Below, piece after piece: positions 39,735 through 60,804 of a DNA stretch of 64,000 nt. The stretch lies in IMG/VR virus record IMGVR_UViG_3300042350_004528, positions 124,001 through 188,000 of that record; one strand, written 5' to 3'. A program made the translations under genes and the position numbers. The notes under the pieces were generated by a model. That model worked only from the letters and a program-made list of their open reading frames with translations. It ran no database searches and was not told the DNA's origin. Position 1 is the first letter of the stretch; each line of letters begins with the position of its first letter.

Positions 39735-40103
39735 ATGAAACCAATCGGTTCGGAAAAAATACAAAACGCAGATGAAAAACTAGCTAGAATTCTAGAAATT
39801 GCTGGCGTTAAAAAAGGATCAATAAATGAATCTAAACCATTGTATGGTAGATTAGCCAACGTTTTACACGAATCAGTTGCTGCTGATGGAACTGAATATG
39901 GCATTGTTCAAGAGGAAAAACACGTTTACATAAAAGTAAGAAAAAACGATAACTACGAATATATCACTGGAGTTGAAAACATCCGTGAACATTCTTATAG
40001 ATCATACGCTGATGCACTTAAACACTTGAACTTGATGTTCAAGCAAATTAATGAAAGTGTGGGGCAAAATGAAAACATTGACGTTTTAAAAAAAAAAGTC
40101 TAG
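39735..40103 (+). CDS. Putative head-associated protein, N-terminal part (possibly frameshift-fused to the next ORF)
   Basis: DEKLARILEIAGV tag-like helix. Ends in TTTA10 slippery run. Confidence 0.7.
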   Translation: MKPIGSEKIQNADEKLARILEIAGVKKGSINESKPLYGRLANVLHESVAADGTEYGIVQEEKHVYIKVRKNDNYEYITGVENIREHSYRSYADALKHLNLMFKQINESVGQNENIDVLKKKV

Positions 40104-40114
40104 ATGAAAAGTAT

Positions 40115-41005
40115 GTGTTAAGGTTAAAAACACCAGCGGCACAACCAACTCAAGATTTTACTGACACAACATTTACGGAGCCATCTGGAGAGACATCAGA
40201 TGGTTCTTCTGTTTCTACCGATCAATCAACAGCTGATTTGGAGGCCGATTTATTAGATACAAATCAAAGTGAACCTGCTGTTGACGGTGCAGAAATGGAT
40301 ACAACCACAACCGACACAACTGTCGCTACTGACGGTACAGAAGCTCCAGCTGAGGGTGGTGAAGAAGATCCTGTAAAATCAATTCAAAAATTAACAGGTA
40401 AATTATCTCAACAGATTCGCGATACACAAGATAAACTCGAACCAGAGGATATTAAATACACATTAAATTCAATTATATCAGCAACCGATATCAATAAATT
40501 AAGTGACGAGGATAAAACTGATATTATGAATAAAATTGAGAATAAAGACCAGGAACCACAAGAAGAGGTTCCGACTGAAACTCCAGCTGAAGAACCAGTA
40601 ACCGAAGGTGAAGATGGTGATTCAGAATCTAATTTTTACGAATCTTTATTATCTGATAAAACAGTTATACATATTTTAGATATGGCTGACTTGAATTACG
40701 AGATGAGAAATAATCCAGAAGAGATTGCATTTGATTTTTGCGAAGCTGCTTATGTTTTTATTCATGATTATAATGATTCAAATGAATTTATTCAAAAACT
40801 AAAAATATTATTAAACGAAAATCAATTTAAGGCGAGACCTAGTTTAAATTCAAAAGATGATCTCGAATATTTTGGTGATAAGATTTATGATGCTTTGGTT
40901 AAACATGAAACCGAACATGGTGGTGAGGTTTTAATGGAACAAAGAATAATTTCAATTCTGGAGAGAGCAAGACAAAACGTAAAGAATAATTTAAATAAAC
41001 AATAA
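40115..41005 (+). CDS. Acidic putative head-associated protein (C-terminal part of possible fusion)
   Basis: The -1 frame is open from 40082. Acidic low-complexity region plus KSIQKLTGKLSQ helical domain. Confidence 0.7.
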   Translation: MLRLKTPAAQPTQDFTDTTFTEPSGETSDGSSVSTDQSTADLEADLLDTNQSEPAVDGAEMDTTTTDTTVATDGTEAPAEGGEEDPVKSIQKLTGKLSQQIRDTQDKLEPEDIKYTLNSIISATDINKLSDEDKTDIMNKIENKDQEPQEEVPTETPAEEPVTEGEDGDSESNFYESLLSDKTVIHILDMADLNYEMRNNPEEIAFDFCEAAYVFIHDYNDSNEFIQKLKILLNENQFKARPSLNSKDDLEYFGDKIYDALVKHETEHGGEVLMEQRIISILERARQNVKNNLNKQ

Positions 41006-41012
41006 GTTAAAC

Positions 41013-44000
41013 ATGGCAACAAAACCAAATGTATTAAATGAAGTAAATGACATGAGAAGACATATGGGTCTTCCTTTGTTATCTGAGTCCGAGTTACTTA
41101 ATTTAGAAATAAATGAACTTTTAAATGAAGGTACCTGGGAAAATGTAAAATATGCCTTATCAAAATTGGGTAGATATAAAGCTGGTGGTAAAATATTCGG
41201 TAAATCACAAACCGATGCTAAGGCTTTAGCACAGATAACAGCCTTACTTGATAAAGTAGGTAATGAAAAAATCAAAGAATTAGATAGAAGTATCAAACAA
41301 TCTAATCCAGAATTTCCTAATAACAAAAGTCAACAACAGTTTTTGGATACTATTATTGAAATTGCAACTTTATATGATTCATTAGTGGCTGCAACTAAGT
41401 TAAAACCAAACGATAAAGGTTATCTACCAGTTGATGCCGCAAATGCGATTATTGAGGATTTAAGAGCTTACACACAAAAATATTTAGATGTTGATTTAAC
41501 AGCTGCGTTTAGTGTGTTTAATGAGAATGAGGAAATTGGTACTGAAAATTGGATTACACCCGATGAAGTTGAAAGTGATTATGGTTTTTATAGTGATATG
41601 TACAAAGGTGTTTATGGTGTAAGACCACACGGTCAATCAGCCGAACAACTTTGTAATTGGTTGAATTCTCAATTTAAACTCAATGGTAATAGGATCGTTA
41701 GAAAAGATGGTCAAGATGAATTATATGAAGCTGATTTAGATGCAACTAAAGCTAAAGTTGCTGGTAAATTTGCTGACACTAAAGCAGCAATTAAAAGTGG
41801 TGATTTAAAAGCGTATAATACAGAAAGAATGAAAACTTTAAAGTCGTGGAAATTACCATTGGCTTTATTAGGCGCTGGAGCGTCATTTGGTGCCCTGAGT
41901 TGGTTAATTGAATATATTTTCCCACCAGAAAAGATTACCACAATGACACCAGAAACGGTCAAACAAACAACTCAGGAATTACTTGGTAATATAAAACCAG
42001 GTGAGGGTATGACTCAAATCATGAATAGAACTTTGGGTCTTAGTTTAAGCCCAACCTCTAACCCAAATGATGTTGTAGAAGCACTTAAAACTTTAGGTGG
42101 TGGTAATGCACAAACTGGTGTTGATATTATAACACAACAAGGTGGTATATTCAGAGATCCAGTTGCGGCTAAAGAAACATTATCAGCTATCGTTGCAAAC
42201 CCAACTGAACATGGAACAACCTTAAAACAAGTTTTTACTGGAACTTGGGCTGGTACGGGTAAAATGGCTGGTGACACTTTAGTTACGGTGTCTGGCGGTA
42301 ACTTAGTTGGTATGGTAACTAAGGCCTTCACAACTTGGGTTGCAAAAACAACCACAATTAAAAGTGCTAAAGCAATTGTTGCCGCACCAATATTAAAGGG
42401 TTTAGGTATTTTGTTAGCCGCTGGTGCGGTTGCAACGGCATTGGGTAGATACAAAGGTAGAAAATCATCACGTGCACAAATAATGAATGATTTGGTTCAA
42501 TATATCAGACCTATTGAAGGTACAAAAGATAACCCAGATGTTGTTGATGATCCTAACAAAGATGATGGTGGAGATAATAAACAACAAGGTGGTGGAAATA
42601 ACAAGCAACTTTACGACAATCTTAAAAAATATTTTCAGGACATTTTTAATTTCAAAGCGCAAACAAACACTGATACCTACGGAAAAGGCGGTAGCGGAAA
42701 TGCAACTAAACAATATAGCGGTGGTGGACGTGTAACTAGTAAAGTAACACAACCTAATGACATTGACGATATCCTTAAATTAATGGAAGAGGATTTGAAG
42801 TTATACGAATCATTATGTGACATGGATATGTTAGCAGAAGCTGATAGTAGCTTAATGAGATCGATTAACACAAGAGCGACTAATGTTGATACAAGTGATA
42901 AAGGCTTAGCCGACATAGGGTTAAGTCAAAATCAATTAAAATTATTTAAAACACATGTTATGCGTTTAAGTAATTTGATTAAAATGATTAATAAGTTTAA
43001 TTCTGGTGATAAGAATTTAAACAAACTTGTTGCACAAGCAAAATCAAATCCAATATTTAATAAAATTACCGATGATAAAGTTGTTGGTATTGATATTAAC
43101 GAATTATTGAAATCTGACCCAAAAAGTTTAAAAATATTTGTAAGTGATTTTAATAAAGCTGTTTACGCCACTCAATTTAAGAATGGTAATAACATAATGG
43201 ATCAACTTAAAAACATTGGCATCAATAAACTATCAGAGGCTGCTGTAAGAACCCCAAGTAAATCGCAAGCAAACGCTGTTTATAACGCAAGAAGAGAGTT
43301 CTTACAAAACTTTCCTAACCTGATCAAAAGTTTTTATGCAATATTTTCATATTTAATCGATTTGGCCAAAAAGGGTGGTTTAACATCTGGATCAAATCGT
43401 GGCTCTGGACAAGGTGGACAACAAGGTGGTGGATCTGGTCAAGGAACTGGAACTGGACAAGGCGGACAACAAGGTGGTGGATCTGGTCAAGGAACTGGAA
43501 CTGGACAAGGTGGATCAAATCAAGGTGGTGGATCTGGACAAGGAACTGGCTCTGGACAAAGTGGACAACAAGGCGATGGATTCACAGATTTAGATTTTAG
43601 AAGAGAACCTTTACGTCTTGAAGAATCTATTGAATTAATGGAATTAATTGAAGCACATGACAACCTAAATTCAATAATTGAAAGTGTTCTAAAAGAGTTT
43701 GGTGAAAACCAACCTGAAATGGAACAAGGTAGACAAGATGCTGTAAAAAATAGCGATAGTGGTAGAATTTTCACCCAATTAGCTAGAGTTGTACCAGATT
43801 TAAGCACTAAGATAGCTTCTGAGTATAAACAAGCATATGGTCAACAAGTAAATCGCGTTAAATTAGCAAACTTTTTACAAACAGTTTTGGGCGCACTGGC
43901 TAATGTACCACAACAAAAAATGGTTCAATTAATTAATCGTGCCGATATGGATGTTACAGCGTACAGAAGAATGTTAAGAGACATAAAATCTGGTGCTGAA

Positions 44001-44270
44001 GGGCAAGGTCAAGAACCACAAGGTCAACAACAAGCTCAGGCCCCACAGTTTAATCCAGGTACACCAGAAAGGTTTTTACCAGATACGGTTGGTAATTATG
44101 ATTTATCAAAAATCAATCAATCCGCAAGAATAGCACTGGCACAAAAAGCCGCTCAGATCATTAGTAGAAACACTGATATGAAATTGGATTCCACTAATAT
44201 GATGGAGGTTATGAAACAACTTCTTGATGACATCAGTAAAAACGGACAAAAACAGATTCCAACAATCTAA
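41013..44270 (+). CDS. Large putative internal/ejection protein with membrane segments
   Basis: N-terminal tag LNEVNDMRRHMGL, two hydrophobic helices (LPLALLGAGASFGALSWLI; APILKGLGILLAAGAVATALG), Gly/Gln repeat, many LxE sites. Confidence 0.6.
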   Translation: MATKPNVLNEVNDMRRHMGLPLLSESELLNLEINELLNEGTWENVKYALSKLGRYKAGGKIFGKSQTDAKALAQITALLDKVGNEKIKELDRSIKQSNPEFPNNKSQQQFLDTIIEIATLYDSLVAATKLKPNDKGYLPVDAANAIIEDLRAYTQKYLDVDLTAAFSVFNENEEIGTENWITPDEVESDYGFYSDMYKGVYGVRPHGQSAEQLCNWLNSQFKLNGNRIVRKDGQDELYEADLDATKAKVAGKFADTKAAIKSGDLKAYNTERMKTLKSWKLPLALLGAGASFGALSWLIEYIFPPEKITTMTPETVKQTTQELLGNIKPGEGMTQIMNRTLGLSLSPTSNPNDVVEALKTLGGGNAQTGVDIITQQGGIFRDPVAAKETLSAIVANPTEHGTTLKQVFTGTWAGTGKMAGDTLVTVSGGNLVGMVTKAFTTWVAKTTTIKSAKAIVAAPILKGLGILLAAGAVATALGRYKGRKSSRAQIMNDLVQYIRPIEGTKDNPDVVDDPNKDDGGDNKQQGGGNNKQLYDNLKKYFQDIFNFKAQTNTDTYGKGGSGNATKQYSGGGRVTSKVTQPNDIDDILKLMEEDLKLYESLCDMDMLAEADSSLMRSINTRATNVDTSDKGLADIGLSQNQLKLFKTHVMRLSNLIKMINKFNSGDKNLNKLVAQAKSNPIFNKITDDKVVGIDINELLKSDPKSLKIFVSDFNKAVYATQFKNGNNIMDQLKNIGINKLSEAAVRTPSKSQANAVYNARREFLQNFPNLIKSFYAIFSYLIDLAKKGGLTSGSNRGSGQGGQQGGGSGQGTGTGQGGQQGGGSGQGTGTGQGGSNQGGGSGQGTGSGQSGQQGDGFTDLDFRREPLRLEESIELMELIEAHDNLNSIIESVLKEFGENQPEMEQGRQDAVKNSDSGRIFTQLARVVPDLSTKIASEYKQAYGQQVNRVKLANFLQTVLGALANVPQQKMVQLINRADMDVTAYRRMLRDIKSGAEGQGQEPQGQQQAQAPQFNPGTPERFLPDTVGNYDLSKINQSARIALAQKAAQIISRNTDMKLDSTNMMEVMKQLLDDISKNGQKQIPTI
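43400..43575 (+). repeat. 48-bp-period tandem repeat encoding GQGGQQGGGSGQGTGT
   Basis: About 3.5 degenerate copies. Confidence 0.8.
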
Positions 44271-44273
44271 TAG

Positions 44274-44302
44274 AAAAAGGCCAGAAATTTCTGGCCTTTT
44301 TT
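44274..44302 (+). terminator. Intrinsic terminator
   Basis: Perfect palindrome AAAAAGGCCAGAAATTTCTGGCCTTTTT. Confidence 0.9.
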
Positions 44303-44353
44303 ATTTGTTTATATCATTTTTTTTTATTATTCTTGTGTAAATAAATTACACAT

Positions 44354-44923
44354 ATGTTAATTGGAATAATCGGAAAAAAACGCTCAGGTAAAGATACATC
44401 TGGCGATTATCTTGTACAAAATAAAAATTTTACAAAATACAGTTTTGCAAACCCAATAAAACGTGGGGCTATGGAATTGTTCGGGTTCACTGAAGATCAA
44501 GTATTTGGTGACGCAAAAGACGTTATTGACCCAACCTGGGGAATAACACCAAGACTCGTTTTACAAATCATGGGAACTGAAGTATTCCAATATGATATGC
44601 CAGAATACATCCCAGAATTAAAATCCATTGGTCGTGGGTTTTGGGTTAAGAGATTTGAACAGTGGTATCAAAAAAATAAAAACCTGGATGTTGTGATTTG
44701 TGATGTTAGATTTCAGCATGAAGTTGACGCTATTTTAAAAATGGGTGGTACTGTTTGGAGAGTTGAACGTCCTAACTTAAACGGCGGTGACGAACATGCA
44801 TCTGAGAAAGAAATGGATTTAATTGAGGGTGTGACCAACATTCTCAATAATGAAGGTACCTTAGATGAGTTATACAATAAAATAGATTTGTTATTGCCTG
44901 ATAGTGTCGTTAGCAACGATTAG
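44354..44923 (+). CDS. Deoxynucleoside monophosphate kinase (T4 gp1-like)
   Basis: GKKRSGKDT, SFANPIK, PRLVLQIMGTE, DVRFQHE, HASE. Confidence 0.92.
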   Translation: MLIGIIGKKRSGKDTSGDYLVQNKNFTKYSFANPIKRGAMELFGFTEDQVFGDAKDVIDPTWGITPRLVLQIMGTEVFQYDMPEYIPELKSIGRGFWVKRFEQWYQKNKNLDVVICDVRFQHEVDAILKMGGTVWRVERPNLNGGDEHASEKEMDLIEGVTNILNNEGTLDELYNKIDLLLPDSVVSND

Positions 44924-45329
44924 TGATAGAATTGATAGTATTGTAAGTTTATACAATTACAAAGTACCGTTTGTTGTGGCGGAGTATCTCTGTATGGCAT
45001 ACCACCAGAATATTGTTTGTAATCTAAAAATTAACTACAAAAATTTATTCGCTAATTTTATTGAACACAAAGACAACATTAAATATGTTTTTGGCAAAGC
45101 AATCGATGGTGGAACCAATAAATCCGAATATACTTTTATAAAATTATCTGGTGTTGAGATAGATATACCGATTGGTAAAGACGAAAGTTTTATGGAAAAA
45201 TACTCGAATTTAATTTTTGGGTCGAGTGTTAATTGTGGTTTGGAATGGTTTGATGAAGAAGATTACCCCAACGAAAAAATTGATCTAGATAAATCAAAAT
45301 ACATCGGTAGGTGTAAAATTACTTTTTAA
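44904..45329 (+). CDS. Hypothetical protein
   Basis: 141-aa ORF overlapping the kinase end. Confidence 0.6.
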   Translation: MSLATISDRIDSIVSLYNYKVPFVVAEYLCMAYHQNIVCNLKINYKNLFANFIEHKDNIKYVFGKAIDGGTNKSEYTFIKLSGVEIDIPIGKDESFMEKYSNLIFGSSVNCGLEWFDEEDYPNEKIDLDKSKYIGRCKITF

Positions 45330-45330
45330 A

Positions 45331-45597
45331 TTACCATCTACCAGATAAATAGGTTAACAACTGCCCAAATAATCTAATTTCAACATCATCGTAGGCACCT
45401 TTTTTATATTTTACTGAAGTTGCTCTTTGGCCTGTTGTATTAGTAATTGCCTTTAAAACATTTGTCATAATCGCATTAGGTAGATCTCTTCTCCTAAAAG
45501 AGCCAACTCTAACCATATCCCCTTCATATTTACCATTGAAGGAGTACTCATTAACCATTTCGATTATCTTACCTTTACTAAGTGTAAATGGATTCAT
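45331..45597 (-). CDS. Hypothetical protein (88 aa)
   Basis: Start MNPFTLSK at 45597, directly after the upstream stop at 45599. Confidence 0.6.
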   Translation of the reverse strand: MNPFTLSKGKIIEMVNEYSFNGKYEGDMVRVGSFRRRDLPNAIMTNVLKAITNTTGQRATSVKYKKGAYDDVEIRLFGQLLTYLSGRW

Positions 45598-45598
45598 A

Positions 45599-46138: not shown

Positions 46139-46203
46139 ATCCTTTTTATTATAAATATCTCTACAATCGCATTTGTTCAGATATTTATAACTAAATTTGT
46201 AAA

Positions 46204-46602
46204 ATGAAATTTATACCAAAAGAAAGGTACGCAATTAATTATCCAGGTAGAAATACCTTAATACTTGTTGACGTTGATAAATTTTTAAATCGTTTAAAAA
46301 AAGATGACCCAGATTTTTATGTTGGGCCAGATACAAAATTATTATTTAGTCAGGGTAGAATTAAAAACTCAATGGATTACATTGAAAAGTTTTCAGAAGA
46401 TCCCAGATCAATTCATCCAAAAACGGGTGAGAGGTGGTCGTACACTATGATGTTTGAACCAACCGAAACAAGTATATCTAACGGTAAATTAGGTATAAAA
46501 AATGGTAGACACAGAATGGTTGCTTTAAAGAATTTAGGTTACACCCATGCTTATGTTGAGGTACCCAAAGATCAAACTGATTTATTTAAAGATTTAGCTT
46601 AA
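46204..46602 (+). CDS. ParB/Srx-like domain protein
   Basis: NGRHRMVALKNLG motif. TATTTAT at 46182-46188. Confidence 0.6.
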   Translation: MKFIPKERYAINYPGRNTLILVDVDKFLNRLKKDDPDFYVGPDTKLLFSQGRIKNSMDYIEKFSEDPRSIHPKTGERWSYTMMFEPTETSISNGKLGIKNGRHRMVALKNLGYTHAYVEVPKDQTDLFKDLA

Positions 46603-47183
46603 CAACCAAGCGTTTGTTTTGCTTCATTGCGCAAGTTTTCGTTGTAAATCCCATCCTCGTCATCAACATTTTCACATGTAACAATTAGGAAAAATGCAGC
46701 GCCAGTAGTCCACTCATCCATATTACCAATACCTAAGTTTTTACCCTTTTTAGTATGATAATTTAAATAACTCTCCAAAGCATCACCAATTTGGTCATCA
46801 TCTACATATTCCTTCCAATCACTAGCGGTTGTTAAATATTTACCATCCTCATCCTCATCCTCTTCTTGAGCCCTTTCTAAAAAGTCCCATAATTCATCTT
46901 TTATGTCGCTGTTTTGATCATCCCAAACTTCATCCATTGTATATAACAATTCGTTAGTTTTTTTGTTTTTTAAAAGGTATTCACCACTAGTAACACTAAC
47001 TAATTCATAATCACCACTAGCTGTTATTGCATCACTCATATGCGGATCACTTTGATTCCATGGGGCGTCTGGCGTATCTGAGCCAGCTGGGTAATTATAA
47101 TTATCCATCTCTTGAACTCTCTTCATTTCTAATTTCTCGAACAATTTTTGTAATTGGTCTTCGGTTATTCTGTATTTAGCCAT
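46599..47183 (-). CDS. Acidic hypothetical protein, N-terminal YRITEDQL motif
   Basis: TATTTAT at 47199-47205 (minus). Confidence 0.7.
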   Translation of the reverse strand: MAKYRITEDQLQKLFEKLEMKRVQEMDNYNYPAGSDTPDAPWNQSDPHMSDAITASGDYELVSVTSGEYLLKNKKTNELLYTMDEVWDDQNSDIKDELWDFLERAQEEDEDEDGKYLTTASDWKEYVDDDQIGDALESYLNYHTKKGKNLGIGNMDEWTTGAAFFLIVTCENVDDEDGIYNENLRNEAKQTLGC

Positions 47184-47220
47184 GATCTATATTTTAATAT
47201 AAATATCTTAAATAATAATA

Positions 47221-48176: not shown

Positions 48177-48779
48177 TTAATATTCAAAAATAATTTTATT
48201 TGGTTGTAATCTACCGCTGATGGCTTGAGTATAAAAAGCATCGCCACTTTCATAAGTTCTATTAGATTCAAATACAACCTCAGTATCCATTGATGGAATT
48301 TCAATATTTTTTCCACCCAAATCCATAGTCCCACTTAAAGTGTTTGTTTTTAAACCACTTCTATCGAACTCTAATTCAAAGTCTTTCTCAAAAGAATCAT
48401 CATCACCAGTTAATTCCAATGAGCCATAAATCAAAACACTAATAGGTGATAAATAAACATCTTTAATACCATATGACCTGTATTCTATTTCAATTGAATA
48501 GTTGGCAACGGCCCCACGAAATGTTATATATGTGTCATACTCAACACCATCCACAATCACAGTTGCCCCCCTTGTCCCTGGTTTTGCTATGTTTTTAAAT
48601 AAAGCTTCCATATCGATATCTAGATCAATATCGGAACCACTTTTCAATTCGTTTCTAAAAACATTATTAGATGCGTCAGCCTCATTCATATTAGCTGATT
48701 CGTTAGATTGTTTGTCTTTTTGTTTTTTACTGAGTATGGCAGCAAATTGAGTTTCAGATATTCTATATGTTTTTTTCAT
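48177..48779 (-). CDS. Hypothetical protein, N-terminal YRISETQF motif
   Basis: TATTTAT at 48792-48798 (minus). Confidence 0.7.
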   Translation of the reverse strand: MKKTYRISETQFAAILSKKQKDKQSNESANMNEADASNNVFRNELKSGSDIDLDIDMEALFKNIAKPGTRGATVIVDGVEYDTYITFRGAVANYSIEIEYRSYGIKDVYLSPISVLIYGSLELTGDDDSFEKDFELEFDRSGLKTNTLSGTMDLGGKNIEIPSMDTEVVFESNRTYESGDAFYTQAISGRLQPNKIIFEY

Positions 48780-51017: not shown

Positions 51018-52193
51018 TTAAATGTAATTAATAATCTTTTTAAATCTATTAATCGCCTCGTTAAGTTTCTCATCTTCTTCGTAAACTTTACCTTCAGCAC
51101 CAGCTCTCATTTTCATAAAAGAACCCTCTTCTTTAACTTCTTCCTGACCACCCTCTTCCATTGGCTTATCTTCACCTTCAGCAAAAGTACCGTCTTCTCT
51201 TACAGCGCCCGATTCAATATCATCCATACTTGGTACAGCGTATTTGTTAGTCTCTTGTTCTTCGTAATCTTTTATCATAGCTTCAATCTCATCAACACCA
51301 TCTTGAGCGTTTTTGGTGAAACCTGTTAGTCTGCTATAAGCATTACTCAACCACTGTTTAACTTTTCCGAACATTTCTTCAACACCCTCAAAAACTTTCG
51401 AACCATCAATCTTTAATTGGCCTTTAACCTTTGAGGCTACTTTAGAGTTTTCTAAAATTTGTTCAAGAACTTTTCTAGTGTTCTCGTTAACTTTTGTTAA
51501 CGCAGTCTCAAACGCATCTTTATATGATGTTGTTAATTTTTCAGATTCCTGGATTATTTCAACCAACATCTCATCTATTGAAATTTTTAGTTTTTCGGCA
51601 CCTTGGGTCTGACCTTTAAATGCATCCATAACCTCTGGAACCAAAGCGCTTTTTTGTGTTTCCAAATCAGCTATTGATTCTTTATAAGTTTTTAACGCCT
51701 CATCTAATTGAGTTTGAATTGTTTTTAATTCAGCTATTTTTTGGTTAATTGTATTTTCCATATTTTCATTTATATTTTTTTTATCGTCATTGGTTTTAAC
51801 ACCAATCTTGGTGGTTTTACCCCAAACTGATGTTCTTATTTTACCCTGTTTGTTTTTTAATGTCACCTCAACTTTTCCACTCGGCGTTTTAGCCCCACTT
51901 GAAACTGAAACTATTTCTTCACCACTGGTAATTATATCACCCTTTTTTAAGTATTGGGCTTCTTTTCGATCAACACCTTCCTGTAAACTTTTTTCATCTT
52001 TATCAATACCCATGGCAACTCTAAAATCATTATAATCGTAAGCCAAGTCGGTTGCATATCTGTAAACGGCTATATCAATTTTACCGTCTGGGTATTTACC
52101 CCAGCAATACACCCATTTCTCACCACCCATTTCAAATGGCGTTTCATCTCTGTATGGTTTGTAATATTCAACAACATCCATAGTACTTCTCAT
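51018..52193 (-). CDS. Multi-module protein with C-terminal tag KLNEAINRFKKII
   Basis: Modules separated by LQEG and INEN. Coiled coil. TATTTAT at 52211-52217 (minus). Confidence 0.7.
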   Translation of the reverse strand: MRSTMDVVEYYKPYRDETPFEMGGEKWVYCWGKYPDGKIDIAVYRYATDLAYDYNDFRVAMGIDKDEKSLQEGVDRKEAQYLKKGDIITSGEEIVSVSSGAKTPSGKVEVTLKNKQGKIRTSVWGKTTKIGVKTNDDKKNINENMENTINQKIAELKTIQTQLDEALKTYKESIADLETQKSALVPEVMDAFKGQTQGAEKLKISIDEMLVEIIQESEKLTTSYKDAFETALTKVNENTRKVLEQILENSKVASKVKGQLKIDGSKVFEGVEEMFGKVKQWLSNAYSRLTGFTKNAQDGVDEIEAMIKDYEEQETNKYAVPSMDDIESGAVREDGTFAEGEDKPMEEGGQEEVKEEGSFMKMRAGAEGKVYEEDEKLNEAINRFKKIINYI

Positions 52194-52991: not shown

Positions 52992-53027
52992 ATTTGCGCT
53001 GGATATTTATCTAAGTAACACATTTCA

Positions 53028-53645
53028 ATGAATCATCATATCGAAGACGAATTAAAACAAAAGTACCCAGACATCAGGTTTGAGTTATACCCAAATGAAA
53101 AGCACAAAAGGATATATCTCACTGGATTTATGGTTCCACCTAACATGCGTGGAACTGGTATTGGTACTTCTTTTATGAACGATTTAACAAGTCTTGCTGA
53201 TCAACACGGTTATAAATTAACATTAACACCATCAAGCAGTTATGGTGGAAATGTGAACAGATTGAAAGATTTCTACCAGAGATTTGGTTTTGTTTTTAAT
53301 AAAGGTGATAATCGTGATTTCACACACAAGGAAGATATGTACAGGGATCCTAAGATTAATGAAGAGGATTCGTCAAGCACATCGAGCACATCAAGTGGTT
53401 CAAGTGGTGGGACATCAGCCTCAAATAGTCCAGTACCAGATAGAGTTAAAAAAGGAAAAGCAAATCCAATATCAAATACTGGTAAATACGAATTTGGTAC
53501 AACCAGAGGAAAAGCAAATCCAATATCAAATACTGGTGCTTATGACTTTGGAACAAATCGTGGCCCAGCAAACCCAATATCAGAAAATAAAAATAATCGC
53601 CTGGATGAGGCGATTATTAATATGAAAAAATTGATTAATTTTTAA
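53028..53645 (+). CDS. GNAT-family acetyltransferase with RGKANP repeats and C-terminal tag
   Basis: VPPNMRGTGIGT (acetyl-CoA motif A), LKDFYQRFGF. Three (K/R)G(K/P)ANPIS repeats, then RLDEAIINMKKLI. Confidence 0.8.
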   Translation: MNHHIEDELKQKYPDIRFELYPNEKHKRIYLTGFMVPPNMRGTGIGTSFMNDLTSLADQHGYKLTLTPSSSYGGNVNRLKDFYQRFGFVFNKGDNRDFTHKEDMYRDPKINEEDSSSTSSTSSGSSGGTSASNSPVPDRVKKGKANPISNTGKYEFGTTRGKANPISNTGAYDFGTNRGPANPISENKNNRLDEAIINMKKLINF

Positions 53646-53646
53646 T

Positions 53647-54741: not shown

Positions 54742-54804
54742 AATTTAATATTTTACAATAAATAGTATTAAAGTTTAAAATAACTCGAGATATTTATATT
54801 ATAT

Positions 54805-55518
54805 ATGAATTTAAACGAGCAGATATTAAGAATGAAAACCATGATCGGTTTATCCGAGGTTACCATTCCACAATCAATTAAAAAATCGGTTGGTGATGTT
54901 TTGTTTGGTTCAAATCCAATAATTGCAAAAATTCAAAACAAACCAATTGAAAAGAATACCCCATACGAGGATAACCTGGTTGACAAAATAAAGGATTGGA
55001 CATTTCAATCAACAGAAAAATCCGAGATGGGCGTTGTATCAACAATATCCGATTTAATTAAACTAAAAAAATATTTTCCAGAGGTTCTCAACCCACCGTA
55101 TGGTGAAAAAGTTTACAGAGGAACATCGGTTAAATTACCAGAGCTATCCAAATTCATAAAAGAAAACCCAGAACATGATGTTTTGGATAACGGTGCGGTT
55201 AAATTTAAAACACCCTACCAGTATACCCCAAAAAGAGAAGTTAGTAGTTGGAGTGCATCCTTGTTCTACGCATCATCATTTCAGGGCAAATCATTCGAGA
55301 GTGCTGTGAATGTCCCAGTTATTTTTGAAACAACTGTCGATGACACATTCATTATGAATCCAAAAGTTATGAACATCATATTTAAATCAACGGGCGGTGT
55401 TCACCAGGATTTTATAAGGGACGAGGACGAGATTATGAAGTACAACCCGAGTGGTACTTACCATCTAATTTTGTCAGAAGACGAATACGAAATATTCGCA
55501 CCAAATGCCGAGGTCTAA
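54805..55518 (+). CDS. Putative ADP-ribosyltransferase (R-S-E type) with N-terminal tag
   Basis: KVYRG, VSSWSASLFYASSF and RDEDEI follow the R / SxS / ExE order. N-terminus LNEQILRMKTMIGL. Confidence 0.6.
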   Translation: MNLNEQILRMKTMIGLSEVTIPQSIKKSVGDVLFGSNPIIAKIQNKPIEKNTPYEDNLVDKIKDWTFQSTEKSEMGVVSTISDLIKLKKYFPEVLNPPYGEKVYRGTSVKLPELSKFIKENPEHDVLDNGAVKFKTPYQYTPKREVSSWSASLFYASSFQGKSFESAVNVPVIFETTVDDTFIMNPKVMNIIFKSTGGVHQDFIRDEDEIMKYNPSGTYHLILSEDEYEIFAPNAEV

Positions 55519-55605
55519 AACCGCCGAAGGCGGTTGCGAAAAAATTTTTCTTTTAAATGAATTTTTCTTATTTTTGTGATATATATGTAAAATAATCAGA
55601 ATATA

Positions 55606-55788
55606 ATGTCGATGACCAACGAAGAAATAGCAGAAGAAATCTACCACCAAGCGTTTGATCTCGGATTTATCGATTTACTTCGTGAAAAGGTTGGTTATAT
55701 TTACAAAACAACGCATGTGAAAGATCACAGTGATGTTGTGCAAAAAGCATATAATTTATTGGTTACAGAAGGTTTGATACAACTATGA
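55606..55788 (+). CDS. Hypothetical protein (60 aa)
   Basis: Its TGA overlaps the ATG of the Asn leader peptide. Confidence 0.6.
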   Translation: MSMTNEEIAEEIYHQAFDLGFIDLLREKVGYIYKTTHVKDHSDVVQKAYNLLVTEGLIQL

Positions 55789-55864
55789 GATTCAGAAGAA
55801 AATACAATAACAATAATAATAAAATAGTAATTGGAAATCCTGTCATTTGACAGGATTTTTTTTT
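55785..55864 (+). promoter_or_regulatory. Putative Asn-sensing attenuator: leader peptide MRFRRKYNNNNNKIVIGNPVI* (55785-55850) overlapping a terminator (55835-55864)
   Basis: Five consecutive Asn codons plus a sixth in the stem. Hairpin AAATCCTGTC-ATTT-GACAGGATTT followed by a T run, 28 nt before the AsnRS-like gene. Confidence 0.7.
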
Positions 55865-55892
55865 GCGCCAAAAATTAAACAAAAAAAAACAA

Positions 55893-56708
55893 ATGAAAAA
55901 CACAGAAACTTACAATGAACTCGTGCAGAAGATGCGCAAATTCTTTCTTGAAAGAGGATTCAAGGAAGTGCCAACACAATCAAGATTATCAATTCTCGCG
56001 GCTTGTGAGAACCCACACTCGGTTAAAACGTTCGAGTATGGTGGTTTGATCTGGCCGTTGCCACAGACTGGACAGATGTGGCTTGAGTATGAGTTGTTAA
56101 AGAATCCAGAATGGAATGGCGTATTTTGCGTATCAACATCGTACAGAGAAGAAAAGAACCCAATCCCAGGAAGGCATGAGCTTATCTTCCCAATGTTTGA
56201 GTTTGAGTCAAAGGGAACCATGGAGGATTTAATCAAAATGGAAGGCGACCTTTTGGCTTATCTTGGATTTGGTGATGAGATGGTTCAAGTTAAATACGAT
56301 GATGTGTGTGAGGAATACGGTGGGGTACCAATTCTTGAGGATGAGCATGAATCCAGAATGTGGAATGAAAAGGGTAATGTTGTTTCATTACAACACTTCC
56401 CAATCAGAACAAATCCATTCTGGAACATGAAACACAATAACGATGGGATTTTCAACAAGGTTGATGTGATTCTTTACGGACAGGAAACAATTGGATCCGC
56501 CGAGAGAAGCTGCGATGTTGAGAAGATGAGAGAAATGTTTTATGCTATTGAGAACGGTGCGTATTGCGCCAAGTTGTTCGAGTTATTCGGAAAAGAAAGG
56601 GTTGAGGCTGAGCTTGAGGAATTCTTGAAGCACAATTTCTTCCCAAGATATGGTGGTGGAATCGGGATGACCAGAATGGCCAGAGCGTATGAGTTATTAA
56701 AGAAATAA
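55893..56708 (+). CDS. Class II aaRS (Asn/Asp) catalytic-domain-only protein, probably an asparagine synthetase of the AsnRS-derived type
   Basis: Motif 1 (MRKFFLERGFKEV), motif 2 (SYREE...GRHELIFPMFEFE), ETIGSAER, motif 3 (GGGIGMTRM). No anticodon-binding domain. Confidence 0.8.
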   Translation: MKNTETYNELVQKMRKFFLERGFKEVPTQSRLSILAACENPHSVKTFEYGGLIWPLPQTGQMWLEYELLKNPEWNGVFCVSTSYREEKNPIPGRHELIFPMFEFESKGTMEDLIKMEGDLLAYLGFGDEMVQVKYDDVCEEYGGVPILEDEHESRMWNEKGNVVSLQHFPIRTNPFWNMKHNNDGIFNKVDVILYGQETIGSAERSCDVEKMREMFYAIENGAYCAKLFELFGKERVEAELEEFLKHNFFPRYGGGIGMTRMARAYELLKK

Positions 56709-56732
56709 AAAAAGGGGCGAAAGCCCCTTTTT
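56709..56732. terminator. Bidirectional terminator
   Basis: AAAAAGGGGC-GAAA-GCCCCTTTTT. Confidence 0.9.
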
Positions 56733-56742
56733 CTTTTTATCT

Positions 56743-57360
56743 TTAATCTTCTCCGCCCCAATCTTTATAATCACCAAATCTTTCGTTGTCTTCATAACCA
56801 GCGTTGTACGCTTCGATTTCTTCTGGTGTTAAATCGGTGATTCTCTCACCTTTGTAAGTTCCTTCTGGATACTTATGTGGGCTCTTGGGTCTTCTGTAAT
56901 ATGAATCGGCGTGACCGCGATCATATGGTGATCCGTGCGAATCATCGTATTTCTCACTTCTACCCTCCTGAAATATTTCAGTTCTTGGTTCATCGTAATG
57001 ATCCAACTTACCTATTGGGTAACGTTCGCCCGTCTCAGCGTTGTATTTAATGATTATCTTACCATCATCACTATCACCTATAAAATAATGTACATTATCA
57101 TCAGCTAAACTATAATATAATGGTCTGTCATAATCGTCAAACTCTCTTTGAACAACTTTTTCACCACTTGCGGATTCGATCGCGGCTTTTTCGAAATCGA
57201 AATCACTTTCCATTTCCTCGCCACCTCTTTCGGAATTATAGTTAAAAATATCATCGGTGTATGCATTTGGATTATCCACCTTTGATAGATCAATTTCTTC
57301 ATTAAGACCCATTATTTTGCGGAGTCTCGCAATTTCTTCATTTAATGTATTCTTTTTCAT
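56743..57360 (-). CDS. Tagged multi-module protein (LNEEIARLRKIMGL)
   Basis: Start MKKNTLNEE at 57360, TATTTAT at 57380-57386. C-terminal small domain HGSPYDRGHADSYY...AYNAGY. Confidence 0.75.
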   Translation of the reverse strand: MKKNTLNEEIARLRKIMGLNEEIDLSKVDNPNAYTDDIFNYNSERGGEEMESDFDFEKAAIESASGEKVVQREFDDYDRPLYYSLADDNVHYFIGDSDDGKIIIKYNAETGERYPIGKLDHYDEPRTEIFQEGRSEKYDDSHGSPYDRGHADSYYRRPKSPHKYPEGTYKGERITDLTPEEIEAYNAGYEDNERFGDYKDWGGED

Positions 57361-57415
57361 AGAAAAAAACAATTTATTGATAAATAGTTTGTCAAATCCA
57401 AAAATATTTATGAAC

Positions 57416-57724
57416 ATGGTAAAACTTTTTGAGAGAATACATATCCCATTGTGGATCGCAAAGGATATGTTCTGGATGTTGGGTCAGGGCGAACTCTCAT
57501 TGGCTTTCGCGATACCAACCATAATATTATCAACAATACTCATAACAGTAAAACAGGGGTCGGAAAGGTGGCTCGAGATGATGATGGCCTTTTGGTTATC
57601 AGCCAATACCTTATGGATGTCCCACGAGCTTTTTCATACGGACACAAAAGAAATTGCATTAACCTGTTTTTTATTTGGCATTTTAACAATTCCAATCTAT
57701 TTATTAAAGATAAAAGAAGAATAA
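57416..57724 (+). CDS. Small multi-pass membrane protein
   Basis: HIPLWIAKDMFWM..., about four hydrophobic segments. Start at 57410 or 57416. Confidence 0.65.
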   Translation: MVKLFERIHIPLWIAKDMFWMLGQGELSLAFAIPTIILSTILITVKQGSERWLEMMMAFWLSANTLWMSHELFHTDTKEIALTCFLFGILTIPIYLLKIKEE

Positions 57725-57732
57725 AACTAGTT

Positions 57733-59307
57733 ATGAAACTAACTGAGGAAATAAAGAAAATGCAATCCATGATGGGCATTATGTCCGAGGATGTGAAAAT
57801 ATACGCAAACGGTGTTGGATCTGAGGTGTTTAATGATAACGAACATTACGGAAAGGTTGATGATATTAATTTAAATGACACCATAGCAAATGAACCGTTT
57901 AAGGATATGGAATACATGGATAAAAGTTCCAATGTCGATGATATGGTTCAAGCCTTGAAATCTGGTGAAGAGCTGCCACCAATACTTGTTATTCAACACC
58001 CCTTCGACCAATCAAAATATTTGGTTGTCGATGGAAACCATAGAAGATACGCATATGACCGCGCAGGTGCTGATAAGATTCCAGCCGTTGTGATTAAACC
58101 AGAGGATGTTTTGTTAATGCAATCCGATTGGGGTGATCCAGAGGAAAAGGCGATCAGATTATCTGATGTTATATCCGATCCAGAGTTGTTTGCTCGAGAA
58201 AACACAAGAATGTTAATTGACAAGTATTTTGTTAAACCAGACGGATCACATGAGTTCGAATTGAATGAAAATTTATATGAGGAAAAGAAAAAAGCCGATC
58301 GTTGTTTAAGAATAGCGAGAAGAAAATACAGCAAACCATCAGCATATAGATCTGGTGCAATCGTTCAATGCAGAAGAGGAAAGATATGGAGAGGTTTGAA
58401 GGAAGAGGAGATCCAAATGATTGACAACGCACCAGAGGAAATGCAAGGTTTGATCGCCAAGGCTCACGATGCTTTGACGTGGAAGAGGGGTCGAAAAGAA
58501 TATGCTCCAGATTTTAATGAACTTCAAACATGGGTGGATGCTTATTTGGAGACTGACGGTGGAATGCATGAAGCGAAGAAAACCGATTTCTCAAAGGAGA
58601 AAAAGAGCGGACTTCACGGATGGTTTTCAAGAAGAGGTGGTGGCGGAAGCAAAGGATGGGTTGATTGCAACACATGCAGAAAAGTTGACGGAAAGAAAAA
58701 ATGCAAGGCTTGTGGAAGACAAAAGGGTGAGGTGAGAGCCAAGTACCCATCATGCAGACCAACACCAGCATCATGCGGAACACCAGGAAAGGGAAAATCT
58801 TGGGGCAAGACAAAGGAAGAGGGTTACAGCTTGAATGAAGCCAAGGAGATGAAGAGAGTTGCTTTGCTTTTCATTGTGATTGACAACGAAGCGTTGTTGT
58901 TCAAGAGAAGCGAAGACGAAACAACAAATCCAGGAAAATACGGAATGCTTGGTGGTGGAATTGAAAAGAATGAAACGCCAGAGGAAGCAATCGTGAGAGA
59001 GATCAGAGAAGAAGCTGGTGTTGAGTTGAAATCATTCAAACCACTGAAGAAATATATTTACAACAACGAGTGTGAATTAAACGTATTCTACACAAACGAA
59101 TTTCCAATTGATGATGTTGTGCTTGACAAGAACGAACACACATCGTACAAATATTTCACGATGGAACAATTGATAGATATGGATCCAAAGGATATGATTG
59201 GTTCCAACAAAGAAATCGCGAAGGATTACAACGAGATCGCAAACAAGAAAAAGAAATTGGAAGAAGAGATAGAGAGAATAAAAGCTACGATGAAGATTCT
59301 TATTTAA
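57733..59307 (+). CDS. Tagged polyprotein-like fusion: ParB/Srx domain, two Cys-rich basic modules, NUDIX hydrolase
   Basis: LPPILV...VDGNHRR (ParB). PSAYRSGAIVQC and GWVDCNTC...CGR...YPSCRP modules. Nudix box GGGIEKNETPEEAIVREIREEAG. Tags at both termini. Start at 57733. Confidence 0.8.
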   Translation: MKLTEEIKKMQSMMGIMSEDVKIYANGVGSEVFNDNEHYGKVDDINLNDTIANEPFKDMEYMDKSSNVDDMVQALKSGEELPPILVIQHPFDQSKYLVVDGNHRRYAYDRAGADKIPAVVIKPEDVLLMQSDWGDPEEKAIRLSDVISDPELFARENTRMLIDKYFVKPDGSHEFELNENLYEEKKKADRCLRIARRKYSKPSAYRSGAIVQCRRGKIWRGLKEEEIQMIDNAPEEMQGLIAKAHDALTWKRGRKEYAPDFNELQTWVDAYLETDGGMHEAKKTDFSKEKKSGLHGWFSRRGGGGSKGWVDCNTCRKVDGKKKCKACGRQKGEVRAKYPSCRPTPASCGTPGKGKSWGKTKEEGYSLNEAKEMKRVALLFIVIDNEALLFKRSEDETTNPGKYGMLGGGIEKNETPEEAIVREIREEAGVELKSFKPLKKYIYNNECELNVFYTNEFPIDDVVLDKNEHTSYKYFTMEQLIDMDPKDMIGSNKEIAKDYNEIANKKKKLEEEIERIKATMKILI

Positions 59308-59413
59308 CCTTCGCAAAGACAAACGCTACCTTCACATTCTGGGCAGCAAGTTCCTGGTTCAACCACGGGTAAAAACATTAAAGACAATTTTTATTATAGA
59401 AAAAAAGGATCGA

Positions 59414-59965
59414 TTAGTTCGATCCATTTTCATTTATATTCTTTTCAACATTCTGTTTCATCCCGCGAACCATTTTAAGAAGACTGGAGTTATCGGTCTT
59501 AACGATGGTTGTCACCTGTGGTTCAGGTTCACGTGGCATTATCATGGCTGATACCTCACCGTCCCCAGAACCAGAACCGCCAGTTTCCATGCGAAGAGTT
59601 CTTTCGAAACGAACTGGTGAGCTGGTTGAGGTTGAAACAACTTTATTATGTGTCTTTTGAGCTTCACTCTCCATATTGGTCAACATCTCAAGAATTTCCT
59701 TCTCACGAGATATGAATCTGTCCGTGCAAACGGTTTGATTGCTGATAACAATATCATTAAGTTCATTCACCCTGTCACTAAGGCTCTTTATCATAACCTT
59801 TTGGTTTTCCACCTTGTGTAATAATTCCTCATTATCTTGGGTAAGACCTTCGATAAGCTTAGGGCCAATTGAGATAATCACAATGGACAAAAGAACAATC
59901 CCAAGAGCAGCAAGACGCTGTTTCATGGAGATCTTTGAGATGATTTCTGAAATATATTTAAACAT
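59414..59965 (-). CDS. Membrane-anchored coiled-coil protein
   Basis: TM LAALGIVLLSIVIISIG followed by a coiled coil. TATTTAT at 59984-59990 (minus). Confidence 0.65.
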   Translation of the reverse strand: MFKYISEIISKISMKQRLAALGIVLLSIVIISIGPKLIEGLTQDNEELLHKVENQKVMIKSLSDRVNELNDIVISNQTVCTDRFISREKEILEMLTNMESEAQKTHNKVVSTSTSSPVRFERTLRMETGGSGSGDGEVSAMIMPREPEPQVTTIVKTDNSSLLKMVRGMKQNVEKNINENGSN

Positions 59966-60120
59966 GTCTCTATTTGTTTAAATATAAATATTCGTGTTTA
60001 CAGTAAATTGTTTACTGTAAACTAAATTAAAAGCAACGGGGGTAAAAATTACCATAATGTGTCACCATCCCCAGGAGGGTGTTCGGAATAAAGGGTTTGT
60101 AAAAATTGTGGGGTTATGAA

Positions 60121-60804
60121 TTATATTCCAACGGTTGGTGAGTCCATGTTCTCACTTAAACCATAATGTTTCTCAACCAAAGTTTCAAAGTAATTTAAAA
60201 GTCCTTCTTTACCAATACCACTTTCTTTGGCTTTCGCAATGAAGTCATCAGCACTAGCACCAATTCCACCTTGAATCCAGTCCACATCAGCAGCTGTGAT
60301 TATTTTTTCATTGATTGGTTCCTCACTCATTCTATTTAAAAAACTATTTAATTTTCCATTACTATAAGTTAAACCAAGTTCTTTGGTTAACTTTTCAAGT
60401 ACTCTAACCACTTGAGTTTTATATGGGTCTGAATAAGCTCTAACAAAAGATCCAGAGCCACGATTAAACATGAAACCGTATATTCTTTGATCTATTTGAC
60501 TAATCACATATTTTTTCTTCTCTTCTGGTTCTGTTGGTATTGACCCAGTATATTTTTGGTCTGACTCAACAAAATCGGTTACCAGTTTATTAAAAGCTTC
60601 CACAAATTCTTTTGCTTTTGTTGGATTTTCTTGCCAAGAATCATTACGAGCACTATTATTAATTGATAAACCTTTAATTATTGGTTCCATACGTCCAAAG
60701 CCATCATCAATTATTTTAACGGAATCAACGAACTCGTTTAGATTCTCATTAAGGCCCATCATCTGGCGTATTCTTAAAACTTCTTCATTTAAGGTATTAT
60801 TCAT
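60121..60804 (-). CDS. Tagged protein (LNEEVLRIRQMMGL)
   Basis: TATTTAT at 60826-60832 (minus). Confidence 0.75.
   Translation of the reverse strand: MNNTLNEEVLRIRQMMGLNENLNEFVDSVKIIDDGFGRMEPIIKGLSINNSARNDSWQENPTKAKEFVEAFNKLVTDFVESDQKYTGSIPTEPEEKKKYVISQIDQRIYGFMFNRGSGSFVRAYSDPYKTQVVRVLEKLTKELGLTYSNGKLNSFLNRMSEEPINEKIITAADVDWIQGGIGASADDFIAKAKESGIGKEGLLNYFETLVEKHYGLSENMDSPTVGI

Follow-up and report, generated by a model that had tools for sequence, protein, structure and literature searches.

The window analysed here, a 64,000-nt stretch of a large uncultured T4-like phage from freshwater samples (IMG/VR record IMGVR_UViG_3300042350_004528, positions 124,001 to 188,000), contains a T4-type head module with gp20 portal, S77 protease, scaffold and gp23 capsid protein (Pfam Portal_T4 5e-77, Peptidase_S77 5.7e-19 and Gp23 1.1e-74, plus the PHROG head maturation protease). 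Further along lies a set of otherwise unrelated genes, whose products carry similar short peptides at their ends. The relevant features are the following, with bit scores and p values from an independently built scoring matrix of the tag.

545..2392 (+), T4 gp20-type portal, part of the head module that defines the assembly system.
4623..5339 (+), prohead maturation protease (Peptidase_S77, T4 gp21 family), the presumed enzyme that removes the tags, with ILKE at residue 8, like the 9-residue self-cleaved N-terminus of T4 gp21 (PMC9958956).
5301..5336 (+), C-terminal tail EFLSKLSSFLGK of this protease, only a weak match here (Phi-x-K-Phi-x-x-Phi-Phi-G; p 0.025).
6969..7037 (+), C-terminal peptide LNESTAYKNPQLERMLDIIGKIK of the scaffold (gene 5787-7040; 7.0 bits, p 4e-4, rank 3 of 51).
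7245..7253 (+), LNE at residues 58-60 of the gp23-type capsid protein (7074-8660), the predicted maturation cleavage site.
39780..39809 (+), possible weak variant LARILEIAGV near the N-terminus of the 122-aa protein 39735-40103, followed by INE; first gene of the 39735-40115-41013 operon.
41034..41072 (+), class-1 tag (variant LNEVNDMRRHMGL) at residues 8-20 of the 1085-aa protein 41013-44270, followed by LSE, INE and LNE (18.5 bits).
47121..47183 (-), class-2 N-terminal tag (MAKYRITEDQLQKLFEKLEMK) of the 194-aa protein 46599-47183.
48723..48779 (-), class-2 N-terminal tag (MKKTYRISETQFAAILSKK) of the 200-aa protein 48177-48779.
51021..51065 (-), C-terminal tag LNEAINRFKKIINYI of the 391-aa protein 51018-52193 (7.2 bits, p 4e-4), close in pattern to the protease tails LNEKI(N/D)(K/R)IKxILNS in relatives.
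53601..53642 (+), C-terminal tag LDEAIINMKKLINF of the GNAT acetyltransferase 53028-53645 (p 0.007).
54811..54858 (+), class-1 N-terminal tag LNEQILRMKTMIGL+SE of the 237-aa protein 54805-55518 (28.4 bits), whose family carries conserved YRG / SxS / ExE motifs.
57298..57345 (-), class-1 N-terminal tag LNEEIARLRKIMGLNE of the 205-aa protein 56743-57360, the most widespread cargo family.
57739..57780 (+), class-1 N-terminal tag LTEEIKKMQSMMGI of the ParB_N + NUDIX protein 57733-59307 (20 bits).
59257..59304 (+), C-terminal tag LEEEIERIKATMKILI of the same ParB_N + NUDIX protein (10.5 bits, p 1e-4; top-ranked C-terminus in the window).
60745..60792 (-), class-1 N-terminal tag LNEEVLRIRQMMGLNE of the 227-aa protein 60121-60804 (32.9 bits).
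57380..57387 (-), one example of the late-type promoter box [ACG]TATTTAT; others start at 2411, 4600, 5739, 34608, 38167, 38925, 39695, 46181, 52648, 53003, 54790 and 57697 on the + strand, and at 31589, 46158, 47206, 48799, 52218, 54765, 59991 and 60833 on the - strand.

An earlier note, made from the sequence alone, had described a recurring amphipathic peptide at these gene ends, and this observation is confirmed: every peptide that it listed is present, and the phenomenon is much larger than reported there. The class-1 motif, LNE-E-I-x-R-I-K-x-M-M-G-L-(N-E), occurs in the window only at ORF termini, with five N-terminal and three C-terminal copies. A loose regular expression applied to the six-frame translation found seven matches, all within a few residues of an ORF start or stop, whereas the copy in 41013 is a one-residue-shorter variant that still scores 18.5 bits with an independently built position-specific scoring matrix (PSSM). 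A core expression, Phi-x-[RKN]-Phi-x-x-Phi-Phi-[GNK]-Phi, which was designed after seeing the sites, gave 13 hits in the window proteome, of which ten are terminal, against 0.5 +/- 0.7 expected from shuffles. The second class noted earlier (YRITE/YRISE) is a diverged form of a very common tag, MKK-I-I-R-L-T-E-S-D-L-x-R-I-V-K-R-V-I-x-E.

Several details of the note require correction, however. The peptide of 39735, which the note itself had called weaker, matches the post hoc core expression but does not rank with the independent PSSM. The true starts are 57733 and 57360 rather than those of the longer ORFs, with the promoter box lying between the alternative starts. NUDIX and ParB, listed as separate cargo, are two domains of one protein, which is tagged at both ends. 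The 'ART-like' assignment rests only on the conserved motifs in the 54805 family: this cargo modelled poorly (pLDDT 66), and its ADP-ribosyltransferase-domain neighbours in a fold search were far from significant, so that it remains a motif-level hint. No tagged membrane protein was found; 59414-59965 has the promoter but no tag. Finally, the note did not record that the C-terminus of the protease also matches the core expression.

An important question is whether the motif could be a by-product of conservation at the nucleotide level (a shared translation-initiation region, a recombination cassette boundary or a mobile DNA element) or a compositional chance effect in an AT-rich genome. All N-terminal copies do lie next to a conserved promoter and start region, and an 81-nt copy of the 3' end of the scaffold gene, a single recent DNA duplication, terminates an unrelated ORF elsewhere in the same genome. 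Codons, however, vary freely at conserved residues: nucleotide identity between copies is only 43-76%, with synonymous codons differing at identical residues. In addition, the same peptide occurs at C-termini and between domains, the number of terminal hits far exceeds that in shuffles, and the class-1 DNA pattern gave no hit in 596 Gb of bacterial and archaeal genomes. This explanation is already contradicted and very unlikely; the motif is conserved as protein, not as DNA.

The absence of the class-1 pattern from prokaryotic genomes also led us to reject a cellular origin or mimicry of a host signal. The class-2 pattern gave nine hits there, mostly on MAG contigs of Bacteroidales and Prevotellaceae, and eight of the nine sit just after a start codon. 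In IMG/VR, by contrast, the class-1 motif recurs at the N-terminus of 32 distinct proteins in 16 unrelated families, and it is found in 96 clusters (E<=1e-3) of a 1.84-billion-protein library. Among the distinct N-terminal contexts in IMG/VR, 43 of 43 class-1 and 123 of 128 class-2 matches sit just after a start codon. Homologous cargo occurs with the tag, without it or with a different terminal tag, and a relative ends in LNETIERMKSIIGL, i.e. the N-terminal consensus placed at a C-terminus. Natural fusions place one tag between two cargo domains: in the relative P0201, a GNAT-tag-cargo protein replaces the C-tagged GNAT and the N-tagged 54805 protein of the window, with a single internal tag joining the GNAT to the 54805-type cargo, and P0099 is a NUDIX-tag-X-tag-Y protein.

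The tag region does not correspond to a described family, as no Pfam-A or PHROG hit covers it in about 30 tagged proteins, and the motif strings are absent from the paper library that was searched. A PDB sequence search with four carriers gave no meaningful match (three had no hit, the fourth only weak hits, best E 0.0024, that do not point to a function). For the 205-aa cargo, AF2 predicts a helix at residues 3-16, disorder at 18-52 and a folded domain at 55-205, which modelled well but has no PDB neighbour. Megablast of the region, tblastn of two cargo proteins and tblastn of both tags against 50,697 GenBank phage records found nothing useful; neither tag was found in these records, and no cultured relative was found.

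Could the peptide then simply be a self-contained structural element, an amphipathic helix for oligomerization or membrane binding that has been spread by domain shuffling without any role in targeting or cleavage? It is indeed predicted to be helical and amphipathic, and a Met- and Ile-rich face is typical of interaction helices. Conservation, however, goes far beyond amphipathicity, since L1, N2, E3, R7, M12, G13 and L14 are invariant or at least 90% conserved across unrelated families. Moreover, placement is strictly terminal or in linkers, the helix is separated from the folded domain by a predicted disordered linker, the peptide is phage-specific and the same peptide ends the prohead protease in relatives. 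We therefore regard this alternative as improbable.

The strongest link to the prohead is one that the earlier note did not have. In related phages the S77 prohead protease itself ends in the tag, for example in LNEKIDRIKSILNS and INEKINKINQILGI: of 47 distinct S77 homologues, 28 have their best class-1 PSSM match exactly at the C-terminus, 15 of them at 9.8 bits or more. In the window's own genome the protease tail is only a weak match, with the clear protease tags being found in homologues that are 42-51% identical. The note's proposal that the tag resembles the C-terminus of the scaffold is supported by a match to the independently built PSSM, at the pattern level only (about 7 bits). This C-terminus is the most conserved part of the scaffold and nearly invariant in relatives whose scaffold is only about 50% identical overall. 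The 81-nt copy of the scaffold's 3' end that terminates an unrelated ORF is a further link. A DNA pattern for the scaffold C-terminus retrieved only scaffolds, and no co-variation with the tag is apparent, as relatives whose scaffold ends in ...MINKMK still use MMGL tags.

The sites flanking the tag are consistent with proteolytic release. (L/I)xE ends within eight residues after the tag in 52 of 53 distinct contexts, against a background of 8.6%, and this holds where its position shifts. In both classes the two flanking Glu residues are 13 residues apart, by our count on the two consensus sequences. Four of the five (L/I)xE sites of the capsid protein lie in its first 60 residues, and YMLNE followed by A/S/T, at the predicted maturation site, is conserved in five relatives; this LNE at residues 58-60 and the LKE at residue 8 of the protease match the 65-residue and 9-residue propeptides of T4 gp23 and gp21, respectively (PMC9958956). 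It should be kept in mind that protease specificity is extrapolated from T4, and that N-terminal tags also begin with LNE, such that part of the (L/I)xE signal could belong to the binding motif rather than mark cleavage.

Expression signals and gene position point in the same direction. The note's claim that nearly all carriers have TATTTAT upstream holds: [ACG]TATTTAT occurs 32 times in the window, and 21 copies lie 15-48 nt upstream of a same-strand start, including those of the protease and scaffold genes and of nine of the ten tagged genes, with 41013 sitting in an operon behind 39735. The ThyA, UvrD, dNMP kinase and AsnA-like genes lack the box. Class-2-tagged small genes lie inside head modules, next to the protease, in 38 of 80 protease-centred loci.

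An alternative is that the peptide is a general docking tag for a hub other than the capsid, e.g. a phage- or host-encoded chaperone or unfoldase (the window encodes a ClpB/ClpC-like AAA+ protein at 31608-34064), a replication or transcription factory, or another virion part such as the giant collagen-like fibre, with protease and scaffold sharing the tag for a different reason such as common handling or turnover. In favour of this, packaging is inferred from sequence alone, carriers include cytoplasmic-type enzymes, several of them of types not known to be packaged elsewhere (NUDIX, GNAT, P-loop kinase-like), and the tag occurs N-terminally, C-terminally and internally, as generic short linear motifs do. 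However, the two non-cargo proteins that carry or resemble the tag are exactly the two that must enter the prohead, tagged genes sit in head modules and use the late-type promoter, the flanking sites match the capsid protein's own predicted maturation site, and the ClpB-like gene lacks the promoter box. We consider this alternative unlikely, although it is the most serious one.

Overall, we propose with moderate confidence that the class-1 peptide, and probably the class-2 peptide, is a portable prohead-targeting propeptide, a 10-11-residue amphipathic helix bracketed by (L/I)xE. It would dock to a site inside the assembling T4-type prohead, on the scaffold core or on the inner face or N-terminal propeptide of the gp23-type capsid protein, a site that the protease would use through its own C-terminal tail and the scaffold through its C-terminus. 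Any protein carrying the peptide at its N-terminus, its C-terminus or between two domains would be co-assembled into the prohead, and the activated S77 protease would cut after the flanking (L/I)xE sites, free the cargo from the tag and split multi-cargo fusions; the cargo would then stay in the head with the DNA and presumably enter the host at infection. What our analysis establishes is the motif with its strictly terminal or linker position, its portability, its restriction to phage sequence, its identity with protease tails, the flanking sites and the shared promoter, whereas binding, sufficiency for incorporation, packaging, cleavage and injection are inferred. The interpretation in the earlier note, a scaffold-mimicking tag that recruits interchangeable cargo into the prohead for protease release and injection, is thus partly supported: its core idea fits every in silico test that we could run, but its cargo annotations were partly over-read.

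The closest precedent is the capsid targeting sequence (CTS) of the T4 internal proteins IPI-III and Alt. In T4, N-terminal propeptides of 10-19 residues target internal proteins to the core and are removed by gp21, with Alt being processed at both ends, like the doubly tagged ParB-NUDIX protein would be here, and gp21 at its C-terminus (PMC9026906, section 2.6; PMC9958956; PMC3012670). As in T4, a short terminal peptide ending in an (L/I)xE-type site is shared by otherwise unrelated proteins of a phage with gp20/gp21/gp22/gp23-type head assembly, and the layout is similar (class 2 has L7-x-E9; in T4, the processing residues are 8 and 10 according to PMC9026906), but no homology is claimed. 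What differs here is that there are two separate tag classes, that the tag is longer (about 16-22 residues) and far more conserved, that it is used at either terminus and between domains, that it is found on dozens to hundreds of cargo families in uncultured phages, and that it is shared with the protease tail and more loosely with the scaffold tail, whereas the T4 review states that the CTS is not conserved in other core proteins. In HK97 the C-terminal tail of the gp4 protease reportedly brings the enzyme into the procapsid (Duda et al. 2013, J Mol Biol), but is not known to be copied onto other phage proteins as a natural cargo tag. In P22 gp8 (helix-turn-helix) and 80alpha gp46 / SaPI1 CpmB, a conserved C-terminal scaffold helix contacts the capsid protein and a second protein with the same C-terminal peptide competes for or shares the site; those cases concern size-determining scaffolds rather than enzyme cargo. 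Encapsulin cargo-loading peptides likewise target diverse enzymes, via either terminus and predictably from sequence, to the lumen of an HK97-fold shell, yet encapsulins are DNA-free cellular compartments without portal, protease or tag removal, whereas the shell gene here is a gp23-type phage capsid with portal, terminase and protease. The encapsulin peptide consensus is different, and the resemblance is functional only.

A current review of the T4 head states that how proteins are localized to the scaffolding core 'remains mysterious' (PMC9958956), and T4's own targeting peptide is short, weakly conserved and limited to a few proteins. The long and nearly invariant signal described here makes the docking interaction directly testable. 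A more far-reaching reading, which we put forward only tentatively and as slightly less likely than not, is that a sequence-defined cargo-loading code operates in a large clade of uncultured T4-like jumbo phages that probably infect Bacteroidota, with a single docking site in the prohead being addressed by the maturation protease, the scaffold and an open-ended, rapidly exchanged set of enzymes, including multi-cargo polyproteins that the protease cuts apart. If so, the full set of proteins packaged in the head, and presumably delivered to the host, could be read directly from a genome sequence, also from metagenomes of phages that cannot be cultured. The tag could also provide a natural, position-independent and self-removing label for loading proteins into large phage capsids. 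Most carriers have no known family or fold, and they may act in host takeover or counter-defence.

The window, which represents positions 124001-188000 of the 298.8-kb IMG/VR contig 3300042350_004528, belongs to an AT-rich, large, uncultured phage with a T4-like head module, in which the following features are relevant here:

545-2392, gp20 portal
2435-3151 (+), a protein encoded between portal and protease
4623-5339, prohead protease of the Peptidase_S77 type
5787-7040, an acidic scaffold
7074-8660, gp23-type capsid protein

The capsid protein is only 27-34% identical to any sequenced phage. The region of interest at 39.7-60.8 kb is a two-strand mosaic of small genes mixed with genes for a dNMP kinase, UvrD and an AsnA-like protein. 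The latter (55893-56708, +), which is class II aminoacyl-tRNA-synthetase-like (tRNA-synt_2, E 5.7e-14), is encoded among the tagged genes but is itself untagged.

The earlier note had described an amphipathic peptide recurring at the ends of unrelated proteins in this region, and this observation is confirmed and greatly extended by our data. All peptides listed in the note are where it had placed them. A loose regular expression run over the six-frame translation gives seven matches, every one at an ORF end, with the copy in the protein starting at 41013 being a one-residue-shorter variant. A core pattern, Phi-x-[RKN]-Phi-x-x-Phi-Phi-[GNK]-Phi, gives 13 hits in the proteome, of which ten are terminal, against 0.5 expected. 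Codon usage differs between copies, so selection acts on the peptide. Not every detail of the note could be upheld, however: the protein starting at 39735 is a doubtful member, no tagged membrane protein was found, and the designation 'ART-like' for the 54805 family rests on conserved YRG, SxS and ExE motifs only.

The note's claim that the tagged genes share an upstream TATTTAT element also holds. [ACG]TATTTAT occurs 32 times, and 21 of these copies lie 15-48 nt upstream of same-strand starts, which include those of the protease and scaffold genes, the 2435 gene, a giant gene starting at 31557 and 9 of 10 tagged genes, whereas thyA, uvrD and the dNMP kinase and AsnA-like genes lack the box. 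The giant gene (15607-31557, -) is a single ORF of 5316 aa consisting of collagen triple-helix repeats (Pfam Collagen, E 1e-98 to 1e-140 per quarter), with a GC content of 47% against about 32% elsewhere and its late-type box 32 nt upstream; it is followed on the same strand by GT1/GT9 glycosyltransferase genes (13413-15428, 12683-13384 and 10545-12686 downstream) and may encode a giant glycosylated fibre. By contrast, early and metabolic genes without the late box carry TAnnTTTG, the Bacteroidota sigma-A -7 consensus, about 12-37 nt upstream, as seen for the genes starting at 34064 (-), 49378 (-), 49449 (+), 55606 (+), 60941 (+) and 62313 (-). The first of these (31608-34064, -) encodes an 818-aa ClpB/ClpC-like double AAA+ protein (AAA_2, ClpB_D2-small, UVR motif) under such a host-type box.

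Beyond the window, the motif is a widespread, phage-specific and portable module. A degenerate DNA pattern for the N-terminal form found 43 stretches on about 35 IMG/VR contigs, and every match was M-x(1-6)-LNE(E/Q)(I/V)xR(I/M)(K/R)x(I/M)MGL at a protein start, whereas the same pattern found nothing in 596 Gb of bacterial and archaeal genomes. The 32 distinct proteins fall into 16 unrelated families, which mostly have no Pfam hits, with a few being GNAT, P-loop kinase-like, EF-hand or peptidoglycan-binding. A profile of 26 tags (consensus LNEEIxRIKxMMGLNE, with E3 and G13 invariant and L1, N2, R7, M12 and L14 at least 90% conserved) retrieved 96 clusters at E<=1e-3 from 1.84 billion proteins, and nearly all of these carry the tag at residues 3-15. 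Homologues of one cargo occur with the tag, without it or with another terminal peptide. AF2 predicts the tag as a helix (residues 3-16), followed by a disordered linker (18-52) and a confident folded domain.

N-terminal, C-terminal and internal copies are the same module. A relative of the ParB-NUDIX protein ends in LNETIERMKSIIGL, i.e. in the N-terminal consensus placed at a C-terminus. Among metagenomic proteins, P0201 fuses a homologue of the window's C-tagged GNAT to a homologue of the N-tagged 54805 protein through one internal tag, P0099 has the architecture NUDIX-tag-X-tag-Y, and P0110, P0116, P0124, P0129, P0150 and P0181 are similar, i.e. these are polyprotein-like ORFs in which one or two tags sit between unrelated domains. 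P0150 carries a class-2 tag and a class-1 tag in one protein.

The second class of tags noted in the window, YRITEDQL and YRISETQF, comprises diverged members of an even commoner N-terminal tag, MKK(I/V)(I/V)RLTESDLxRIVKRVIxE(Q/S/N). A pattern scan yielded at least 128 distinct contexts, and in 123 of these 128 a Met is located within six residues upstream. In prokaryote genomes there are nine hits, mostly on Bacteroidales or Prevotellaceae MAG contigs, with eight of the nine sitting just after a start codon; together with the TAnnTTTG boxes, this suggests a Bacteroidota host. By our count on the two consensus sequences, both classes share one layout, with (L/I)xE, about 10 helical residues and again (L/I)xE, such that the two Glu residues are 13 apart.

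An important question is what connects these tags to the prohead. When a PSSM built only from tags of other contigs was applied to 51 window proteins, the best C-termini were those of the three C-tagged cargos, the scaffold (7.0 bits, p 4e-4), one small ORF and the protease (p 0.025). The window's own protease tail is only a weak match, and the similarity of the scaffold is at the level of pattern. Weak and unconvincing tag-like matches were also seen at the N-terminus of the 75-aa ORF between terminase and portal (316-543, +; VISRINSIGAM, 7.7 bits) and at the C-terminus of another 75-aa ORF (37412-37639, +; INKFIEMENSL, 1.1 bits). The last 22 residues of the scaffold are nearly invariant in relatives that are only about 50% identical overall, and they stay recognizable down to 32% identity. 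Moreover, an 81-nt copy of the scaffold's 3' end terminates an unrelated ORF outside the window on the same contig (9575-10084, +, in locus L052): this ORF of up to 169 aa lies among NAD-salvage-like genes, its last 27 codons are identical to the scaffold's 3' end in 79 of 81 nt and there is no similarity upstream, which looks like a recent capture of the scaffold tail.

The strongest link is provided by the protease itself. S77 protease homologues that are 42-51% identical to the window's protease end in LNEKIDRIKSILNS, INEKINKIKNILNS or INEKINKINQILGI, and in 28 of 47 distinct homologues of that protease group (48-100% identical to the protease of locus L156) the best PSSM hit is exactly at the C-terminus. 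These tails show almost the same pattern as the window's C-terminal cargo tags (LNEAINRFKKIINYI). In addition, class-2-tagged small genes lie inside head modules, often directly after the protease gene, with 38 of 80 protease-centred loci containing them (71 genes in all). In some relatives (L051:7751-9553 and 5705-7705; L049:2969-5962; L192:11217-13010 and 1961-5251), the protease (about 600 aa against 238), the AAA+ protein (666 against 307) and the portal (997-1096 against 615) are greatly enlarged, with homology split around an insert, and these are probably inteins or homing-endonuclease insertions in head genes.

The sequences flanking the tags are consistent with a putative removal by the protease, although its specificity is extrapolated here from T4. 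(L/I)xE ends within eight residues after the tag's Gly in 52 of 53 distinct contexts, against 8.6% background, which includes shifted forms such as GLIKE, GFINE, GLLTE and GLKPIIIE, and C-terminal tags are preceded by LNE, LDE or LEE. The capsid protein has four of its five (L/I)xE sites in its first 60 residues, with conservation of YMLNE followed by A/S/T at residues 58-60, which parallels the 65-residue propeptide of T4 gp23. Likewise, the protease has ILKE at residue 8, paralleling the 9-residue self-cleavage of gp21 (PMC9958956). The scaffold and the 2435 protein are enriched three- to four-fold in such sites; with 4.6 (L/I)xE sites per 100 aa, a late promoter and a location between portal and protease, the latter is a likely degradable core protein. 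The 296-aa product of 40115-41005 (+), which sits between two tagged genes in one operon, is highly acidic and of low complexity.

Overall, our data establish the motif, its portability among unrelated proteins, its use at either terminus or between domains and its occurrence as the tail of related proteases, whereas binding to a prohead component, presence of any carrier in a virion, cleavage and injection are inferred from sequence and by analogy, and no cultured relative was found to carry the tag. The earlier note's interpretation, i.e. that a scaffold-mimicking tag recruits exchangeable cargo into the prohead for release by the protease and injection, is partly supported; resting on several independent but indirect lines of evidence, it is the best interpretation available and seems more likely than not. 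No curated protein family and no paper in the library searched describes the motif.

In T4, propeptides of 10-19 residues target the internal proteins to the core and are removed by gp21, Alt is processed at both ends and gp21 at its C-terminus, and it has been speculated that the propeptides of gp21 target it to the prohead (PMC9026906, section 2.6; PMC3012670). In principle, there is also a resemblance to the targeting of the HK97 protease by its tail, to scaffold-tail mimicry as in 80alpha/SaPI1 and to encapsulin cargo-loading peptides. In the interpretation favoured here, the present system would follow the T4 principle of capsid-targeting propeptides, but with different and far more conserved sequences that come in two classes, are used at either terminus as well as an inter-domain linker, are explicitly shared with the protease tail and more loosely with the scaffold tail, and serve a very large cargo repertoire.
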